IMG/VR virus record: IMGVR_UViG_3300009011_000002
Location: 162,774-226,773 of that record
DNA: 64,000 bases
Direction: 5' to 3' (one strand)
Shown: positions 3,918 through 54,085 of the stretch, one piece after another
Position numbering within the stretch: position 1 is the stretch's first letter
How the letters are laid out: every line of letters begins with the position of its first letter
Translations under genes and position numbers: made by a program
Notes under the pieces: generated by a model
Seen by the model: the letters and a program-made list of their open reading frames with translations, nothing else
The model's database searches: none
What the model was told of the DNA's origin: nothing

Positions 3918-3953
3918 AAAAATAAAGCCTTAGGCGGAGCAATCCGCCTAAGG
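3918..3953 (-). terminator. intrinsic terminator
   Basis: CCTTAGGCGGA-N4-TCCGCCTAAGG followed on the minus strand by CTTTATTTTT. Confidence 0.85.
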
Positions 3954-3961
3954 TATAACAC

Positions 3962-5443
3962 TTACTGGATGAGTTCCAGCTTACGGCTCAGTTCGATCTT
4001 CAGCGGGTTGCCGTTGTTCGGGATCAGGTTGTAGCGTTCCAGCTCTTCCGGCTTCTTCTCGCTGGACATGACGCGGTAAGCACCCTTGGTCCACGCCAGT
4101 GCGAAACTGCACGAGTGGACGTTACGGTACCAGTCGATCCATTCCTGGGACAGGGTGTGGACTGAGGTGGTGAGGTTGGGTTCTTTCGGGCCCTTGTCGA
4201 TGAACTCTTCCAGGCTCTGCGTGAAGGTCTTCAGCGCGGTCATTGGATTGACTGGACGTTGTTTACCCAGCTGGACAATGACCATGTCTTCGGTGATCCG
4301 CTTGGCGTCGAGCCGCTTGGCTACCAGTTCGCCAAACAGCTGGTAGTATTCCGGACCGAAGTTAACCCAGTTACTACCACCGCCACCGAAGGTGTTTTGC
4401 AACGAGAAGTAATTCATTCCCATGGTGAGGTGGAACGAACGGAAGAGTGCGGCCAGGCGTTCGTCGTTGTAAGAACCGACAATCCGACGAAGGAGGTCTT
4501 CTTTCTCAAGAACCGGTTCGTTCTCGGCGCGGTTGTCGAGCACACGCTCGAAGGCTGCCAGGACCAGTTGTCGAGCAATAGGGAGTACTTCGTTCGGGTA
4601 CTCCCAACTGCGCCCTTGTTCGCCGATGATGACGAAGGTTTCATCCGAACGTTCCGCCCAGGTCTGCTGGATCCAGAACAGCATTTGCTTGAAGTTCATG
4701 CCAGCAACAATGCCCTTGAGCTTGGCGGTGACTTCCTTGCGTTTTTCTTCGGTGAGTTCAGTCACTTCTGGTTCCTTTTCGTTAATAGTTTGCTTCTTGG
4801 CCATTTCAAGAATGCGTTGCATGATACCAGCCGCCACAGAGAGACTCGCGGGACCTTCGTAGCGGTACAATGCGCCGGTGACAACATCGAACTCGAAAGT
4901 GAAATCTTGTTTCGACTCGGTGGTCTCTAACCGGTAATTGAAAATGGTGCCTGGAGTGTCTCGGCTTTCGGTCACGTCCAACCGCCACCCAGCCTGGAGA
5001 CCCTGAGAATCACCGTCGAGGTAAGCCCAGTTATGACGAATAAACAGCTTCGCCAGTTCCAAAGAGTGTTCCATTAACCTGCCTTGAGCTGCCGCCGAGT
5101 TGTTCAGCTTGTCAAGGATGTAGTTATAAACCTCCGAGAAGACTTCGTACACATCACCAGGGCTGGTGCCGAAATCCAATGCAGTCAGACGGTCCCCTGC
5201 AAGGTTAGCCGATACTTCAAAGTCGCGGATAGGGACCCCTTCACCACGGCCGGAGCTGTACTTGAACCCGTAACCAGGCGTACCGGCGAAGTATTGCAAC
5301 CGCCATTCACCGATGGTCAGCCCAGGGGAGTAACTGGACCAGTTCATGACCGCGAACACACCGGCCAGTTCTTTAATTTTGTGGGCCAAGTCGGCAGCTT
5401 GTTTCAGTTCCATGTCCTTACTCGTCATCACGAACAACTCCAT
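3962..5443 (-). CDS. hypothetical protein with duplicated internal domains
   Basis: 493 aa; true start may be a few codons downstream. Confidence 0.85.
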   Translation of the reverse strand: MELFVMTSKDMELKQAADLAHKIKELAGVFAVMNWSSYSPGLTIGEWRLQYFAGTPGYGFKYSSGRGEGVPIRDFEVSANLAGDRLTALDFGTSPGDVYEVFSEVYNYILDKLNNSAAAQGRLMEHSLELAKLFIRHNWAYLDGDSQGLQAGWRLDVTESRDTPGTIFNYRLETTESKQDFTFEFDVVTGALYRYEGPASLSVAAGIMQRILEMAKKQTINEKEPEVTELTEEKRKEVTAKLKGIVAGMNFKQMLFWIQQTWAERSDETFVIIGEQGRSWEYPNEVLPIARQLVLAAFERVLDNRAENEPVLEKEDLLRRIVGSYNDERLAALFRSFHLTMGMNYFSLQNTFGGGGSNWVNFGPEYYQLFGELVAKRLDAKRITEDMVIVQLGKQRPVNPMTALKTFTQSLEEFIDKGPKEPNLTTSVHTLSQEWIDWYRNVHSCSFALAWTKGAYRVMSSEKKPEELERYNLIPNNGNPLKIELSRKLELIQ

Positions 5444-36331: not shown

Positions 36332-36754
36332 CTATAGACGGTTGAGCTGGAAGCTGTTAGCGAAGCGCATAGAATCCGGTGAGATAATGACCGTCAAGGT
36401 CTTCTCTTCCCGCACCAACGCACTGATGTCAGTATCAATGAGGTGGTGACCAGTAATCCGGTGGACCCAGTCTGCGATCATGGATTTGTTGTGCTGTGCG
36501 TCGAAGTCGTTGCGGTACGTAGCCGGGATGTCCAAGCTACGCAGGTTGCTCAACCCCGACAAATTAACTTTAGGGTGGATGTAGTAGTCATTATCCCCGT
36601 TGGGGTGTTCGACCAGGAAACAGTGCTCGTCGGTAGCGCGGCTGTAAGAAGCCCAGGTGATACTGATCGAACTCTCATCAGTAATCATCCGGTCTTCACA
36701 GAAGCGTTTACGAACCAAATTGATTTCCCGGTAGTCTGTAAAACGACGACCCAT
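36332..36754 (-). CDS. hypothetical protein
   Basis: 140 aa, coupled. Confidence 0.7.
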   Translation of the reverse strand: MGRRFTDYREINLVRKRFCEDRMITDESSISITWASYSRATDEHCFLVEHPNGDNDYYIHPKVNLSGLSNLRSLDIPATYRNDFDAQHNKSMIADWVHRITGHHLIDTDISALVREEKTLTVIISPDSMRFANSFQLNRL

Positions 36755-38865
36755 TACGGCAACTCCTCATCTTCGACAACACGGATGTACGTGCTGTCAG
36801 GGAACTTGATCGAGGTAGGTTTGAGGCCTTTCTCGATGTCGTAGAACCTCAGTCGGTCTGGAACCACCACCTTGATGATCGCTTCCGAACCCACTTCAAG
36901 CTGTGGACGGTCTGGGCTCACCACCGGGATGTTGGCTTCGAGGATACCGATCAGGTCGTTGTTCGTAGGTACATGCAACTGTACATACTTGAACTCACCT
37001 TCGAGGTCATTACCCTTGCCAATCCAACGTGGATCCCCCACCGAGATTTCATTCGGCACTTCCGTAACGTCAGTACCGTCGTCCATCTCTTTGATGGTGT
37101 GAATGGTGTAGGAGCTCAGGCCCATCATGATGTCGATGAGGTCCGACTGTTTGATCCGCATTGACGGTTGGGTGTTGGTGTCCCACCCAGTCACACGTTT
37201 GAAGATCTCCCAGGCAAAGCCTCGTTTCTCTTCAGAGGTGTATTCGGAGAAGTCGAACTTGTAATCGAGCAGAAGCGTCCTGTAGTCCGTGTAGTTGCCG
37301 AGTTTGACAATCCCCGAGGCATACATCAGCTTCGTGGTTTGCTTCACCCTAGCGCGCTTGTTGAGGTCGTAGAACTGACTGTAGAGTTTCTTGTGGCTCC
37401 ACATCCAGTCATAGACTTGGAACGCGTACTGGATCAGGTAGTCAGGTGCAACAAACACCGCCACTGGATCCCACAGCGCTCGGATATCTGCTGCCAGCTT
37501 TGGATCGATGAACGCAGGCCCGCCCATGTTGCGCAGTTGCGCGATGGTAGGCGGTTTGATCTTCGAGACGTTCTGGTAGTAGACCTTGTCGATCTTGGTG
37601 GGTTCAATACCCCGAGACGACAAGATCAGGTACTTCCAAATGTGGTACAGGTCGGTAACCGGGATACGGTGTTGTTTACCGCTCTTCGGATCGACCACCA
37701 CCGAACGGCCTTTGAACTGACCGTTACCCGCCAAGTAGATCCACTCGTTGTACGCCACCGACATTAAGGTATCTGCGTGCCGGTTGGTGTAGTCCATCAT
37801 CGAGGACTCTAATGCCTTGGTAGGGAGCTCAGAATGCAAACTGAACTTACCCTTCATCAGGGCATCTTCCAAGTAAATCGACGTGTTGGGGTAGTTCTCT
37901 TTGGCTTGGGTCTGCTGCTTGTTGATCATCACCTCGGTTTCGATGAACTCCGGGGTACGGCCGTAGTCTTCGATGAGGTTCAGGTTCATCCGACGGTACA
38001 ACGGGTTGGGGGTAAGGTCCTCCAAGATGGTCTCGGTGGATTCAACCATGTCGTACTTGGCAATCGGGATAGCACCTGGGGTCAGGATGTTTTCCACCAA
38101 CTTGTTGAAGCTGTACATCTGGCCCGGGTTGTTCTTCAGCCATGCAATGTTGCGGAACAGCCACATGATCTGTTCTTTGGTCATGCTTGCCTTGTACTGC
38201 GAAAAGTCACCGAACGAATCGATGTGACTCCACACGAAAAACTCGTGCGAATGACGTGTAAAAGCATCCTCTAGGCGAATGGCATGAACGACCTCGATTA
38301 CCATGGCGTACAACTTACGCATCATCAATGTCAACATGAGGTCATCGGTGGTGATGTAATCATTCTTGAACATCATGATTACGTTGGCATTGATATGCCG
38401 TTGCAGTTTCGAGATCAACTGATCCTCGTTCCACAACACTAAATTTGTATTCCACCGCAGGATTTTATAGTCTTCTGCCTCAATGGTCTCCTCGTAGGGG
38501 ATCGGCGACAGGATGCCGTTGATCAAGGCAGGCTGGTGTGGATAGGCCTCCATCAGGCGGGTGTACCAATGCCCCCCTTTAGAGTATTCCCGCAGGGTTG
38601 CGATGTGATCCTGGAGGACCTCTTTGGTGAAGTTGATTTCCTCACCTGTATCAATTGAGGTTACCACCATCATGTCATCGGTGGGGTGGTAGTCCCCGTT
38701 CAAATTCATGTAGTACCGCCAGGTACGTTTATCGGAACTGACCGGGTAGTTCGCAGCTATCAGCACGTCATTGTCTCGCTCGGCAACTGCACCGATCTTG
38801 ATGACCATGGTCCTGACCAAGCTGAATGTATCCCGGAAGTACCGGTCTATATCAACACTGTTCAT
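36754..38865 (-). CDS. virion structural protein (phiKZ gp128-like)
   Basis: 703 aa; TWRYYMNLNGDYH..D motif recalled for this family; divergent from the portal. Confidence 0.7.
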   Translation of the reverse strand: MNSVDIDRYFRDTFSLVRTMVIKIGAVAERDNDVLIAANYPVSSDKRTWRYYMNLNGDYHPTDDMMVVTSIDTGEEINFTKEVLQDHIATLREYSKGGHWYTRLMEAYPHQPALINGILSPIPYEETIEAEDYKILRWNTNLVLWNEDQLISKLQRHINANVIMMFKNDYITTDDLMLTLMMRKLYAMVIEVVHAIRLEDAFTRHSHEFFVWSHIDSFGDFSQYKASMTKEQIMWLFRNIAWLKNNPGQMYSFNKLVENILTPGAIPIAKYDMVESTETILEDLTPNPLYRRMNLNLIEDYGRTPEFIETEVMINKQQTQAKENYPNTSIYLEDALMKGKFSLHSELPTKALESSMMDYTNRHADTLMSVAYNEWIYLAGNGQFKGRSVVVDPKSGKQHRIPVTDLYHIWKYLILSSRGIEPTKIDKVYYQNVSKIKPPTIAQLRNMGGPAFIDPKLAADIRALWDPVAVFVAPDYLIQYAFQVYDWMWSHKKLYSQFYDLNKRARVKQTTKLMYASGIVKLGNYTDYRTLLLDYKFDFSEYTSEEKRGFAWEIFKRVTGWDTNTQPSMRIKQSDLIDIMMGLSSYTIHTIKEMDDGTDVTEVPNEISVGDPRWIGKGNDLEGEFKYVQLHVPTNNDLIGILEANIPVVSPDRPQLEVGSEAIIKVVVPDRLRFYDIEKGLKPTSIKFPDSTYIRVVEDEELP

Positions 38866-41800: not shown

Positions 41801-42152
41801 TGGTCTGGATGACAGTGGTTTGGGTGATGTGGAAGGTGCGCCACCAATGCCTGGTGACGAAAGCGGAGCAGCCAATGCGGAAGGTGGTGAAGCGGATGCA
41901 GGCGGTGACGCTGATGCAATCGCAGCAGCTGCAGCCGAGGCTCCACCGATGCCGGGTGAGGAGGGTAGTACCGAAGATGAACCAGCGGTAGAACCTGCTC
42001 CGGGTGAGGAACCTGATCCTCTGGAAGAACCGGAGGATGCCCCGGCAATGCCAGGGGAAGAGGAACCGGAAGAAGGCGGGGAAATTGAAGGGAGTGACGA
42101 TCCTGAAAGCCCCAACTACAACCCGTTCGGAAAGAACGGAAAAAAGAAATAA
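38889..42152 (+). CDS. portal protein (phiKZ gp129-like) with acidic C-terminal tail
   Basis: 1087 aa, GAGG RBS; YIFLLDDEGN and LYVP...VTY.A..YN.LG.G.SL motifs; synteny; G-x-E sites in the N-terminal part. Confidence 0.7.
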   Translation: MGYSDNTRSKTQGNTHVDYTKIRQALNEVSPAVSATLRNAVPRNGSTPERDEIKGKDTINPYKLASLSNIISNNINAVADLRAITPYIDKAELIWNTILLYPNGKQDRILTRDTFPTRYKSTALHALLLKKWDNYYTNDYKIESELGPWINDILWNTGSVTLFNLSRPGLDYLINGSEIDPNDPNARAGQEAFKNEARVKLAAEFESVNGKHIVRNKGMFVRDPNFKATNDQKQYVSGLEALLNGRPNYVGTEFNLFNGLTEEVDGKAEKLSDFMNVTLTDNPAILYLQRFNETTRQQDVLSVMGMESFDNLIVSAFKADEAKKKKDDKALERDQKKNAKAKPEGPEATTQNLTEDQLETLGHTIFRGRNIRHQSMQHVKTQDSLSVQPYGRGLVWHVPSEAVIPIHYNGRTRQKIDYIFLLDDEGNFLKTSGDDSFYQSTTKNQSVQNRPKAGSDNHLISSLRMVQEGKPCDFDMSEFAEMAKSAIIRRYMQSVISNTGDNISVTIDDETNKIFLARMFRRQGIRCLYVPGEAVTYMALKYNRLGMGQSLTQMAKMHIARLAAFDFADALANLQAAQPHSMMTINVEKLDGDPHNTIALARAAFFANNPRLHNLLSTAQLSVPQIADALRESSLTIKVNASENPNMPTPEIDLARMDKEHFKPVDDTSRQKVLNDISNYFHLPRSWLDVSDDQNEFQIEALTEHQMVHNQGANWQSELADHVIDFEKKHARVNGMFLKDFVQEIIDNKNLWKPDSKEEIPGDENQQVKIILSDFFSGLFCYFPEASSTESTNKLKESLDAVQALVQVWEELSGSTVVMGQMAKELGLEDEKYSQDEIKASIKSVFMTEAFRRFNLPMPFDEIVNEGKGGGIASLIHNIVHQRNNVAEFMIKFLEERSKADEKTKKTYKKVLEKLTAPEEPEPGQPGLDEYGNPIEPAAEPQFDDDGNPIEPAADSGEVPAVPGEEGSETTGLDDSGLGDVEGAPPMPGDESGAANAEGGEADAGGDADAIAAAAAEAPPMPGEEGSTEDEPAVEPAPGEEPDPLEEPEDAPAMPGEEEPEEGGEIEGSDDPESPNYNPFGKNGKKK
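41637..42152 (+). repeat. degenerate peptide repeats in the portal tail
   Basis: GNPIEPAA twice; (A)P(P/A)MPG(D/E)E three times plus PAVPGEE and PAPGEE. Confidence 0.85.
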
Positions 42153-50559: not shown

Positions 50560-51662
50560 TAAGAAGTTAGCAGTTTATACCCCGTAAAAGCTACTCCCGC
50601 TAAAGTACCAACAGCTTTAGCGAAATCCCCCCAGGTGTTCTGGGACCCTTTACTCTTCAACATGTCGATGTTCGCTTTACTGACCGTCGCATTCAGACGG
50701 TGCTCGTACTTCGACATATCAGAGTGCAGCTGATGGTGGATCTTCAACTGAGCGATCTCGTTCTTACAGTCAGCCTTGACCTTGTCCATCTCAGTAACCA
50801 ACCGGGCATTATTGAACTCGGTTTGTTCCAGGGTACTGACGGTGGTTTCAAGGGTTTTCTTCAGGGCGTCAATATCTTTAATGAGATCTTTGTTCCTGCG
50901 TTCTACGCTCAGGTAACGCTCAGTGTTCCCGCCTTCATCACAGGCTGCCTTGGTCCCAAAAATCCCGATACCTTCTAAGAGCTTAGGTTTTTCGAGGTCT
51001 TCGAAGGTGTAGTATAGTACTTCCCGTGGTTCAATACCGCAAGAAATACCAACATACAATCCGGGTTTCCGGTTATCGTCATACAGAATAGGGACCTGGT
51101 GAGATTTCCCCAAGGCATTGGTATAGAGTGGTTTACTAATCCGCTTAGGATCGTTCACGTATACAACGTAAGACAATGTTCCGCTACAGGCCATCTCCTT
51201 ATTGATTTCTGCCAACTGTTCGTTGAACAAATGTTTTGGGGAATTCAACGCTGGGCTGTTGATGTTCATCTTACCCAGGTACAACGTGATTCCCAGCAAC
51301 TCACTGTGCAGGGCGTTGTTCTCTTCCACCAACGATTTACCCAAGTATATCTGAACCTGCAGACTGTTCGGCAGATCCTTGTAATACATTTGGTTCCCGT
51401 TGCGGAGGTTCTGCTGTTCTTTAGACAGCTCGCTCAGGATCTTCTTGTCCAACTTCGTCAAGGCGTCTCCCTCATTGATCATGAGGTTTTCCAAGTAGAC
51501 GTTTGCAATGGTTACGTACAAGTAACGGTCTTCTCGGAAGGTGGCTTCAGAGCTGGACTTAATAATGTACGCCAAACCACCTTTAACCTTGACGACTACT
51601 TCATCAGCGGAAGTATTAGTTACCTTATACTCCAGCTTGAAACTGTTCACATTGGCGCTCAT
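50559..51662 (-). CDS. conserved hypothetical protein with C-terminal coiled coil and hydrophobic tail
   Basis: 367 aa, GGAG RBS, coupled to the RNAP subunit. Confidence 0.75.
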   Translation of the reverse strand: MSANVNSFKLEYKVTNTSADEVVVKVKGGLAYIIKSSSEATFREDRYLYVTIANVYLENLMINEGDALTKLDKKILSELSKEQQNLRNGNQMYYKDLPNSLQVQIYLGKSLVEENNALHSELLGITLYLGKMNINSPALNSPKHLFNEQLAEINKEMACSGTLSYVVYVNDPKRISKPLYTNALGKSHQVPILYDDNRKPGLYVGISCGIEPREVLYYTFEDLEKPKLLEGIGIFGTKAACDEGGNTERYLSVERRNKDLIKDIDALKKTLETTVSTLEQTEFNNARLVTEMDKVKADCKNEIAQLKIHHQLHSDMSKYEHRLNATVSKANIDMLKSKGSQNTWGDFAKAVGTLAGVAFTGYKLLTS

Positions 51663-51723
51663 TGTTAAGTCTCCAGCTTGCTAGTGCTTCCAAAGAAGCA
51701 ATAGTTAATCTTTAGTCCCCTTG

Positions 51724-51736
51724 ATAATGTAGGTTT
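51724..51736 (-). promoter_or_regulatory. early promoter for the non-virion RNAP operon
   Basis: Minus strand AAACCTACATTAT, a variant of the AAACCTATATTAC motif. Confidence 0.7.
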
Positions 51737-51754
51737 CAAAATTTGTAAGGAGGC

Positions 51755-51814
51755 AAAAAAGAAAGCCTCCCACCCCACCGCCCGGAAGACCGGACGGCAG
51801 GGTAGAAGGTTCTC
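51755..51814 (-). terminator. terminator downstream of the capsid gene
   Basis: Long imperfect GC stem followed by TTTCTTTTTT on the minus strand. Confidence 0.65.
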
Positions 51815-51889
51815 ACATCAAGCCCGGTAAGGCTACCAGACACCATCAGTCTTCAGGGTCAAGGACCCCGTAGTAGGTGCCGGGTAGCA

Positions 51890-54085
51890 TTATGGGTTTG
51901 GGACAGGGGTGGTCCCCTTGGTCGCGTCGATCAGTTCGGCCATACGGCCGTCCAGACCATCAACAGCAACGCGCTGTTTAGCCAGCTGAGTAAGCAGGCC
52001 TTTGTCACCCAGGAACTCGTGGGCATCTTCGATCGTCAGCGAGCCGATGATCGGGCACAGCGGCCAGTGCTTGTAGGTCGGCAGGGTCATCACGACACCG
52101 AAGTCCTGCTGATCACGAGTCACGTTACCCTGTACGACGATGTTCTCTTTCGAGATGTTCACGCCGATGCCGCCCAGCGGGTTGATGAACTCGCTGGTCG
52201 AGGTGTTCTTCGGCACGATCAGCAGTTGGCCGATCTGGCTGTCGAAGTTGGTTTCCTGCACGTCCAGGGTCTGGTTTGGACCGATGGAACGAGCGTCGCC
52301 CGAACGCATGATGAAGCGCGTCAGGTTCTGGTGGATGACCACGGTCCACTCCGGTGCAGCAGCACCGCCGTATTCCGAGATGGCCGCCAGGCCGGACTTG
52401 GTGTTCAGGGCCGCGGTGATGTCGCTGATCTCGTTCAGGAGAGAAGCGGTCACGTTGTCGAACACACCCTGCGAATCGACGCTGGAAACGACGTCACGCA
52501 GTTTCATGGTGCGGTTGACAGCCGAAGCAGTCACGTAGTGCTGGCCAGCCAGAACGTTGGAGCCCTGGTTGTTGCCGACTACTGGAGCGCCGTCGATGGA
52601 GGTGATGTAGCGCAGGTGTTCCTGAGCGACTTCGAACGCCTTCTTCGAGCACTGGTTGTTGATCACAACCGACATCTGCTGGATGGCGAAGTCCAGGGCC
52701 GACTGGTTGTTGTCGTCAGCACTGATCGGGTACTTGACCGAGATCGGGCTGTTGCGACGAACCGACAGACGCTTGAAGGCGTCGAACACTTCGATGCGGT
52801 AGCCGAAGTTGCCGCGCGAGGTGTTGCTCACGTTGAAGGTGAACTTGGCGGCGGCAACGGTGCCGTCGGTGAAGCTGCGGATCAGGGCTTTCTGCTCGTC
52901 GGTAGCACGACCAACAGTGATGTCGTTGCCGGTAGCGATTTCGCGCAGGGCAGCGATTTCAGCGGTACCGCCCAGCAGGCGCAGTTCGTTGCCCTGGCGC
53001 TGGTAGTTGCCGTTGAAGGAAACGTTCAGCAGAGGCTCGAAACCAGCATCCTTGAAGGCCTTGAAGACGGTCTCGCCGACTTCTTTGCCGTCTTTGTCCA
53101 GCACCGAGAAGCCGGTGTGCAGACGCAGGTACAGGCTCAGGCCACGGTCATCGCTCGACTGAGCGGTGGTGGTTGGGCCGAAGGTGTTGTTCGACATCGC
53201 CTTGGTGTTGATGAAGAACGAGGTCGCGGTGCCGCCGAGCTTGCCGGTGATACCGATCGACGCCAGCGAGATCGAGTTGGATTCGATTTCGTCGGTGTTG
53301 GTCCAGGAGCGCTGGCCAGGAGCCTGGGTCAGAGCCAGCAGGTTCGGGATGGTCACCGGCACTTTCAGGTACTGGGTGCGGTGAGCGTCACGGCCGTAGG
53401 CGTCAGCATCTGGGTAGTTGACTTCGGTCGGAGCCACCAGGGATTCCGGAGCGAAGAGCAGACGGTTTTCGTGGCTGGCGGTTTCCGGGTAAACCGGATA
53501 CAGGGCCAGGACTTCGTCTTTGAACATGTCGCCGGACTTCAGCAGGCCGAAGATCGGGCGCAGTTCCGAGGCCGACTGCCAGGCGCTGTTGCCGTAGGCG
53601 TAGTGGCCCAGACCGGCAGCACGAACTTTCAGGCTGGCGCCTTCGTCTTCGTACTTGACGGTGATGGTGGAGAACAGAGCCTCGGCTGCCTTGGTCTGCA
53701 GGTGCGACTGGGCGTTGAGGGTCAGGTTGGCCGCTTTGATGTCCTGCTCTTTACCAGGCTCGTTCTGCAGCGAGAAGCCTTCGTAACCAGCTACCTCGGC
53801 GAGGGTCTTGCCGACGTCGCGGAAGTATTCCAGCTCGGCCGACGGAGTCACCTGACGGGTCAGGGCGCCGTGGAAGGCGTCGAATTGCTTGTGGGTGATG
53901 CCCTGAACGATCTTCTGCAGCTCCAGGCTTTCCTGGCCGGCAACGTTACCCAGGCCACTGGAGAATGCAGAGAAAGACTCCGCGCCCTGGACAGCGGCGA
54001 AGGAGGACGCTTGAATTGCGGTTTTGATCGCGTGGAAGGAGTTGCCGCCTTCCTTCAACGACGCTTCGAGGTTCTTGAAGGCCAT
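51890..54085 (-). CDS. major capsid protein (phiKZ gp120-like)
   Basis: 731 aa, extreme codon bias, N-terminal G-x-E maturation sites (GAE, GQE, GYE), EALF.TI and LP.Y.H....PI motifs; near DnaB. Confidence 0.85.
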   Translation of the reverse strand: MAFKNLEASLKEGGNSFHAIKTAIQASSFAAVQGAESFSAFSSGLGNVAGQESLELQKIVQGITHKQFDAFHGALTRQVTPSAELEYFRDVGKTLAEVAGYEGFSLQNEPGKEQDIKAANLTLNAQSHLQTKAAEALFSTITVKYEDEGASLKVRAAGLGHYAYGNSAWQSASELRPIFGLLKSGDMFKDEVLALYPVYPETASHENRLLFAPESLVAPTEVNYPDADAYGRDAHRTQYLKVPVTIPNLLALTQAPGQRSWTNTDEIESNSISLASIGITGKLGGTATSFFINTKAMSNNTFGPTTTAQSSDDRGLSLYLRLHTGFSVLDKDGKEVGETVFKAFKDAGFEPLLNVSFNGNYQRQGNELRLLGGTAEIAALREIATGNDITVGRATDEQKALIRSFTDGTVAAAKFTFNVSNTSRGNFGYRIEVFDAFKRLSVRRNSPISVKYPISADDNNQSALDFAIQQMSVVINNQCSKKAFEVAQEHLRYITSIDGAPVVGNNQGSNVLAGQHYVTASAVNRTMKLRDVVSSVDSQGVFDNVTASLLNEISDITAALNTKSGLAAISEYGGAAAPEWTVVIHQNLTRFIMRSGDARSIGPNQTLDVQETNFDSQIGQLLIVPKNTSTSEFINPLGGIGVNISKENIVVQGNVTRDQQDFGVVMTLPTYKHWPLCPIIGSLTIEDAHEFLGDKGLLTQLAKQRVAVDGLDGRMAELIDATKGTTPVPNP

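Follow-up and report, generated by a model that had tools for sequence, protein, structure and literature searches.

A conserved -1 ribosomal frameshift signal at the end of the major capsid gene of an EL-like jumbo phage

The 3' end of the major capsid gene in virus record IMGVR_UViG_3300009011_000002 raises the question of whether some capsid subunits of this phage are extended by programmed ribosomal frameshifting. The window analyzed comprised 64,000 nucleotides (positions 162,774 to 226,773 of the record), and all coordinates below refer to this window. The initial annotation proposed a -1 shift that would add a 16-residue tail to the capsid protein, with the reservation that such a short extension might mean that the stem is only a 3' stabiliser. 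Both the individual sequence elements and their conservation in relatives were examined.

Anatomy of the capsid gene 3' end

The 731-aa open reading frame at 51890-54085 (minus strand) is the major head protein gene, as shown by its match to phrog_3231 (major head protein, E 3.5e-175) and by 62.6% and 58.2% identity to the major head proteins of RisingSun and EL, respectively. The phage is EL/RisingSun-like rather than close to phiKZ itself, the group named in the initial annotation; phiKZ gp120 matched only at E 3.6e-4.

On the minus strand, the 0 frame ends GTC CCA AAC CCA TAA, with the stop codon at 51892-51890. Every element of the initial annotation was found where it had been placed. The slippery heptamer C_CCA_AAC at 51902-51896 is in X_XXY_YYZ register, lies 7 nt before the strong stem, and is the likeliest shift site. 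A second, overlapping in-frame heptamer, A_AAC_CCA at 51899-51893, had been overlooked; it directly abuts the stop codon, and a shift at this site would give the identical product.

The stem-loop at 51888-51832 (minus strand) begins 4-7 nt downstream of the two heptamers. Its arms, 51888-51876 and 51844-51832, form 12 pairs (11 Watson-Crick and one G-U) around one C/U mismatch and enclose a 7-bp hairpin at 51870-51854. The MFE was -30.6 kcal/mol (z = -4.0), and none of 200 dinucleotide shuffles folded as well. The -1 frame, at 51896-51846, contains 16 sense codons followed by TGA at 51848-51846, both enclosed by the stem-loop, and the trans-frame product would be 746 aa long. A separate intrinsic terminator with a 20-pair stem and a T-rich tail was located at 51809-51766 (minus strand), whereas no T tract follows the cassette hairpin.

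A chance origin of this arrangement is unlikely. In-frame heptamers occur at 0.0021 per codon in this genome, and only 4 of 297 long ORFs carry one in their last four codons. Among these, the capsid gene is the only one whose -1 frame then stays open for more than 3 codons. The comparative data are, however, far stronger than this single-sequence statistic.

Conservation and coding signature of the -1 frame

All 38 distinct sequences of this capsid clade, from metagenomes and from isolates including EL, RisingSun and FishSpeaker, share a slip-prone site in the last four codons, an open -1 frame of 14-25 codons, and a lineage-specific self-complementary hairpin. The clade has 98% SH-aLRT support, and three outgroup phages lack all of these features. 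[quoted passage not shown] C_CCA_AAC or C_CCA_AAT is present in most relatives, while in one subclade A_AAC_CCR next to the stop is the only canonical heptamer. In several relatives, a -1 frame stop directly precedes the heptamer, which fixes the shift site. The remaining four sequences have only A_ACC_CCG next to the stop, which is not a canonical heptamer, and the exact slip mechanism may therefore differ, for example by single-tRNA slippage on C_CCG at the stop.

An equivalent hairpin of 17-30 bp starts 0-11 nt after the stop in 38 of 38 sequences (median z -3.2), with the -1 stop always inside it, and the spacer from the first heptamer is 5-8 nt in 28 of 34 sequences. Within the closest subgroup, RNAalifold identified 23 conserved pairs but no double changes, and across subgroups the 3' arms could not be aligned with MAFFT. 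Helices were therefore determined for each sequence separately, yielding 30 distinct self-complementary outer helices. In addition, a near relative (~94% identical) shows a compensatory G-C to A-U double change at 51866/51858, together with an unchanged slip site and a frame-neutral indel pair just upstream.

The -1 frame carries a clear coding signature. The motif hydrophobic-P-x-T-x-Y-G-x-L, encoded at 51887-51861 (minus strand), is retained across the clade, with its Gly using all four codons and its Leu all six. Entropy by codon position in the motif core was 0.84/0.44/1.39. In one subgroup, 7 of 8 variable codon columns were synonymous in the -1 frame, compared to 0 of 8 and 1 of 8 in the other two frames.

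Interpretation of the cassette

Programmed -1 ribosomal frameshifting is the explanation we hold with high confidence, although it rests on sequence evidence, without protein, ribosome-profiling or reporter data. We infer that a ribosome decoding CCA-AAC, or AAC-CCA next to the stop, is held by the stem-loop, and that a fraction of ribosomes slip back one base, miss the TAA, unwind the hairpin and translate 16 more codons. The result would be a minor 746-aa capsid isoform beside the 731-aa main product. Certain observations are less favorable. Published proteomics of RisingSun lysate covered the capsid protein at 75% but report no frameshift product, although that search presumably used annotated proteins only. 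Furthermore, AAC in the A site is probably a weaker shift codon than AAG in E. coli, and the review of frameshifting consulted cites X_XXA_AAC sites only for archaeal viruses.

The alternative that the stem-loop is only a 3' stabiliser or processing signal of the abundant capsid mRNA is in agreement with its stability, its 3' UTR-like position ahead of a terminator and the shortness of the extension, and a protective role of the hairpin for the 3' end remains possible in addition. As the sole explanation it is very unlikely. An untranslated region would not show three-base periodicity, variation that is predominantly synonymous in one frame, or full codon usage at fixed motif positions. Nor would it keep a slip-prone site in 34 of 38 sequences while the heptamer type changes, or encode a peptide that other proteins of the same phages carry in their normal frame. 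A separate canonical terminator is present in both the clade and the outgroups, which lack the cassette, so the cassette hairpin is not needed for termination. A structured RNA acting as such, around the conserved CUACGG, appears equally improbable. The sequence around TACGG is nearly invariant and lies inside a conserved hairpin, but the invariant bases are exactly the first and second codon positions of Tyr-Gly, while the third positions vary. The architecture and arms of the hairpin differ between lineages, the same peptide is encoded in a different nucleotide context in genes of the fibre-anchor-like protein family described below, and comparison with Rfam 15 gave only sub-threshold chance matches, on the terminator hairpin.

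Translation of the tail as a separate 14-codon ORF by termination-reinitiation is suggested by the ATG that overlaps the stop codon in the window (TAATG, 51890-51888) and opens the same frame. However, only 3 of 32 distinct sequences have an ATG, and 7 of 32 any ATG/GTG/TTG, in the -1 frame upstream of the motif. Conservation of the -1 peptide begins at the heptamer in the EL/RisingSun subclades, and in other proteins the motif occurs as an attached tail, not as a free peptide, which leaves this possibility highly doubtful. The same applies to a frame change by transcriptional slippage or an assembly indel. One subclade does have a run of seven A at the site (A_AAA_AAC), but most sites have runs of only three identical bases, likely too short for polymerase slippage. 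The 0-frame stop and the frame offset recur in 38 independent assemblies and three isolate genomes, and contigs from the source sample and from two other samples showed no indel at the site.

Frameshift-extended capsid proteins are already known. In phage T7 (gene 10A/10B) and in T3 (gene 10), a -1 shift a few codons before the end of the major capsid gene yields a minor, C-terminally extended protein that is built into the shell. T7 uses G_GUU_UUC and a distant 3' stimulator that includes the terminator, in contrast to the sites and adjacent hairpin observed here, and its extension, which is not an Ig-like domain, is much longer. The jumbo myovirus studied here is unrelated to T7, and its extension carries a motif shared with other virion proteins. 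In Lactobacillus phage A2 and Listeria phages A118/A500, Gram-positive siphoviruses, a -1 shift near the end of the major head gene gives a second capsid component, which is essential in A2. The A2 extension is described as an Ig-like domain, whereas the extension here is a linear peptide of 14-25 residues in all 38 sequences and does not correspond to a folded Ig-like domain of roughly 80-100 residues. The lambda-type G/GT frameshift likewise uses X_XXY_YYZ heptamers (G_GGA_AAG type) that vary between phages while position and function are kept, setting a fixed ratio of two proteins with a common N-terminus. It acts, however, on a tail assembly chaperone that is absent from virions, and adds a whole domain. 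For phiKZ gp120, a homologous HK97-fold capsid protein, no frameshift is reported in the two structural papers consulted.

EL, RisingSun and FishSpeaker are annotated with a single capsid product, and our full-text searches found no report of frameshifting in this phage group. If the cassette works, each of these phages makes a second capsid protein that structural and proteomic studies have not looked for. It would also represent a deeply conserved bacterial case with X_XXA_AAC and stop-adjacent slip sites.

A peptide motif shared with other virion proteins

The motif also lies in the 0 frame at the C-terminal tail of a fibre-anchor-like protein, here designated P0002, and of all 10 orthologues examined, as well as in EL gp147. 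It was further found in EL gp104 (three tandem copies by the DNA scan) and in RisingSun gp89, gp197, gp205 and gp206. Every in-frame hit in clade genomes lies 2-61 aa from a C-terminus, and the tighter DNA pattern gave no hits in the outgroups. Variable motif positions agreed more within a genome than between genomes (0.373 against 0.289, with 39 of 20000 permutations as high), although this test does not correct for relatedness of the genomes.

[quoted passage not shown] By homology, the C-terminal arm of the capsid protein studied here would also lie at the capsomer centre, and we infer that a sub-stoichiometric set of capsid subunits would display a docking peptide for a partner shared with the fibre-anchor-like and other virion proteins. 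A more far-reaching and only tentative possibility is that the frameshift puts an address label on a few capsid subunits, so that the capsid and the tail-fibre complex recruit one shared partner, such as a head-bound fibre or adhesin, or a common assembly factor, with the motif co-evolving across these proteins within each genome. The shared motif offers a handle on how minor components are addressed to the large capsid and baseplate.

The partner of the motif is unknown. P0002 lies two genes from a GroEL-like chaperonin, and EL gp147 lies next to gp146, but the chaperonin is also present in outgroups without the cassette and is not adjacent in RisingSun or FishSpeaker. A search for genes present in EL, RisingSun and FishSpeaker but absent from Miami and Aphrodite1 gave 20 ORFs. 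Of the nine that lie in the window and were scanned, eight have no PHROG family and are probably antisense shadows, and no usable candidate emerged.

The AlphaFold model of the capsid protein was poor (mean pLDDT 60.6) and showed only a C-terminal helix at 711-723 followed by coil. In the model of P0002, the motif lies in a low-order tail (pLDDT 63-74) without secondary structure. A Foldseek search with this model returned nothing below E 0.001, while a second structural aligner gave one separated match, to the phiKZ baseplate outer periphery (Z 6.6), which is suggestive only.

The capsid gene and its 3' end

The window comprised the last 64 kb of a 226,773-bp IMG/VR virus record with direct terminal repeats, which was assembled from a rhizosphere metagenome. 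ORF 51890-54085 on the minus strand encodes a 731-aa protein that matched the PHROG major head protein family at E 3.5e-175. Identity to the head protein was 62.6% for Erwinia phage RisingSun, 58.2% for Pseudomonas phage EL and 48.7% for Shewanella phage FishSpeaker, and 44% or less for Miami-, Aphrodite1- and pAEv1810-like phages. In contrast, phiKZ gp120 was only a distant match (E 3.6e-4). The phage is therefore EL/RisingSun-like within the phiKZ-related jumbo phages.

On the minus strand, the 0 frame ends GTC CCA AAC CCA TAA. The heptamer C_CCA_AAC (51902-51896), already recognized in the initial annotation, was confirmed to be in slippery register. The same was true of an overlapping A_AAC_CCA (51899-51893) abutting the stop, which had not been noted. 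The arms at 51888-51876 and 51844-51832 form 12 pairs around one mismatch and enclose a 7-bp hairpin, with a folding energy of -30.6 kcal/mol and z = -4.0. The -1 frame yields a 16-residue tail ending at the stop at 51848-51846, in agreement with the initial annotation, and a separate terminator lies at 51809-51766.

After this terminator, at 51724-51736 on the minus strand, the motif AAACCTACATTAT was found, which is conserved at the same place in EL, RisingSun and metagenomic relatives. At about that distance downstream of the capsid stop, the EL record annotates a putative phage promoter. Only two further copies with 2 mismatches occurred in the window.

In this genome, in-frame heptamers occurred at 0.0021 per codon. 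Only 4 of 297 long ORFs carried one in the last four codons, and only in the capsid gene did the -1 frame then run on beyond three codons. An in-frame A_AAA_AAG was observed in the last four codons of a long plus-strand ORF (genome positions 201661-204922; heptamer at about 42140-42149 of the window). However, its -1 frame closes after 3 codons, and the ORF overlaps the minus-strand gp104 homologue, so that it may be only a shadow frame and is probably not a recoding site.

Conservation and coding signature of the -1 frame

Capsid loci were collected from IMG/VR, JGI metagenomes and isolate genomes. After removal of duplicates, 38 distinct sequences of the clade and three outgroups remained. 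Pseudomonas phage vB_PQ1 (PQ516283.1) was left out of the comparison, as the major head gene in this record is split into six annotated pieces with many frame breaks, which looks like an error-rich assembly.

In all 38 sequences, the -1 frame stayed open for 14-25 codons past the slip region and encoded hydrophobic-P-x-T-x-Y-G-x-L, with Y-G-x-L invariant. A canonical in-frame heptamer within the last four codons was present in thirty-four of them. The heptamer type changed along the tree, with C_CCA_AAC/T appearing ancestral. Four lineages independently had A_ACC_CCG next to the stop and still kept the tail, suggesting that slippage of the Pro tRNA on C_CCG at the stop may also work. In RisingSun, FishSpeaker and several others, a -1 frame stop directly precedes the heptamer, and the shift cannot occur earlier.

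The cassette-bearing sequences formed one clade (SH-aLRT 98, quick tree), whereas Miami, Aphrodite1 and pAEv1810 lacked heptamer, tail and hairpin.

When anchored on the Tyr codon, entropy by codon position in the motif core was 0.84, 0.44 and 1.39 bits, respectively. The Gly of the motif used all four codons and the Leu all six, including the CTN/TTR switch. In the closest subgroup, 7 of 8 variable codon columns were purely synonymous in the -1 frame, compared to 0 of 8 and 1 of 8 in the other two frames. Only 3 of 32 distinct sequences had an ATG upstream of the motif in that frame, and a separate small ORF is therefore not conserved.

The downstream hairpin and related frameshift systems

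Every clade sequence contained a 17-30 bp hairpin starting 0-11 nt after the 0-frame stop, with a median MFE of -30.5 kcal/mol and a median z of -3.2. The -1 stop was always located inside the hairpin. The spacer from the first heptamer was 5-8 nt in 28 of 34 sequences. The outer helices had 30 different sequences, each of them self-complementary. No Rfam family matched the hairpin.

Although the source of the window was a rhizosphere sample, contigs from wastewater and groundwater samples hold a relative about 94% identical (window 51600-52600). In this relative, the slip site was unchanged and a frame-neutral indel pair lay just upstream, at 51909 and 51913. Positions 51866 and 51858 changed together, turning a G-C pair of the inner hairpin into A-U. 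One of these changes is Val to Ile at the variable x position of the motif, while the other is synonymous.

Frameshift-extended capsid proteins are established in T7 and T3 (gene 10), Lactobacillus phage A2, and Listeria phages A118, A500 and PSA. The cassette found here satisfied every computational criterion for a -1 frameshift site and, in the absence of experimental evidence for the shifted protein, is predicted to work like those. It differs in the phage lineage, in the stop-adjacent X_XXA_AAC-type sites, and in carrying a short linear motif rather than a domain. The EL, RisingSun and FishSpeaker records annotate one capsid CDS, the RisingSun paper does not mention a frameshift, and literature searches on frameshifting in jumbo phages, phage EL or Chimalliviridae found nothing relevant.

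[quoted passage not shown] The low-confidence model of the capsid protein studied here showed a predicted C-terminal helix at 711-723 followed by coil. Placement of the tail at the outer centre of capsomers is an inference by homology.

Occurrence of the tail motif in other proteins

A six-frame scan of the genome revealed the same motif in the normal frame, nine residues from the C-terminus of a 202-aa protein, referred to as P0002. It is encoded on the minus strand outside the window, at genome positions 143944-144549 (3945-4550 of locus L087, the retrieved region around this gene). All ten orthologues examined, as well as EL gp147, ended the same way, while paralogues did not. P0002 belongs to phrog_18233, and its N-terminal domain recurs in larger virion structural proteins.

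The AlphaFold model of P0002 (pLDDT 90.6) had a disordered motif tail. The only separated PDB match of the model was a 150-residue chain of the phiKZ baseplate outer periphery (Z 6.6), a region that holds the gp131-like fibre-anchor domains.

Variable motif positions agreed more between the capsid tail and the P0002 tail of the same genome (0.373) than across genomes (0.289). Only 39 of 20000 permutations were as high, although relatedness was not corrected for.

A GroEL-like phage chaperonin (phrog_5725, Cpn60_TCP1), the homologue of EL gp146, is encoded two genes upstream of P0002 (genome 144896-146548, minus strand; L087:4897-6549). However, it is also present in outgroup phages without the capsid cassette. 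Neither the chaperonin, nor a complex prediction, nor a phylogenetic profile led to a partner for the motif.

The motif also occurred near the C-termini of EL gp104 (locus L090:2609-4930) and of RisingSun gp89 (locus L091:756-3050), gp197, gp205 and gp206. In EL gp104, the C-terminal region holds three tandem copies by the DNA scan, about 19 residues apart. The homologue in the phage studied here (window 36754-38865, minus strand) is shorter and lacks them. Every in-frame hit in clade genomes lay 2-61 residues from a C-terminus. The single Miami hit from the protein scan was atypical, and the tighter DNA pattern gave 0 hits in three outgroups.

Interestingly, a paralogue family of putative virion proteins in RisingSun (gp196, gp198-200, gp203 and gp204; loci L092 and L089) all end in a different conserved C-terminal motif, P-V/I-x-E-L plus 2-3 residues. 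This hints that C-terminal address peptides may be a general feature of these virions.
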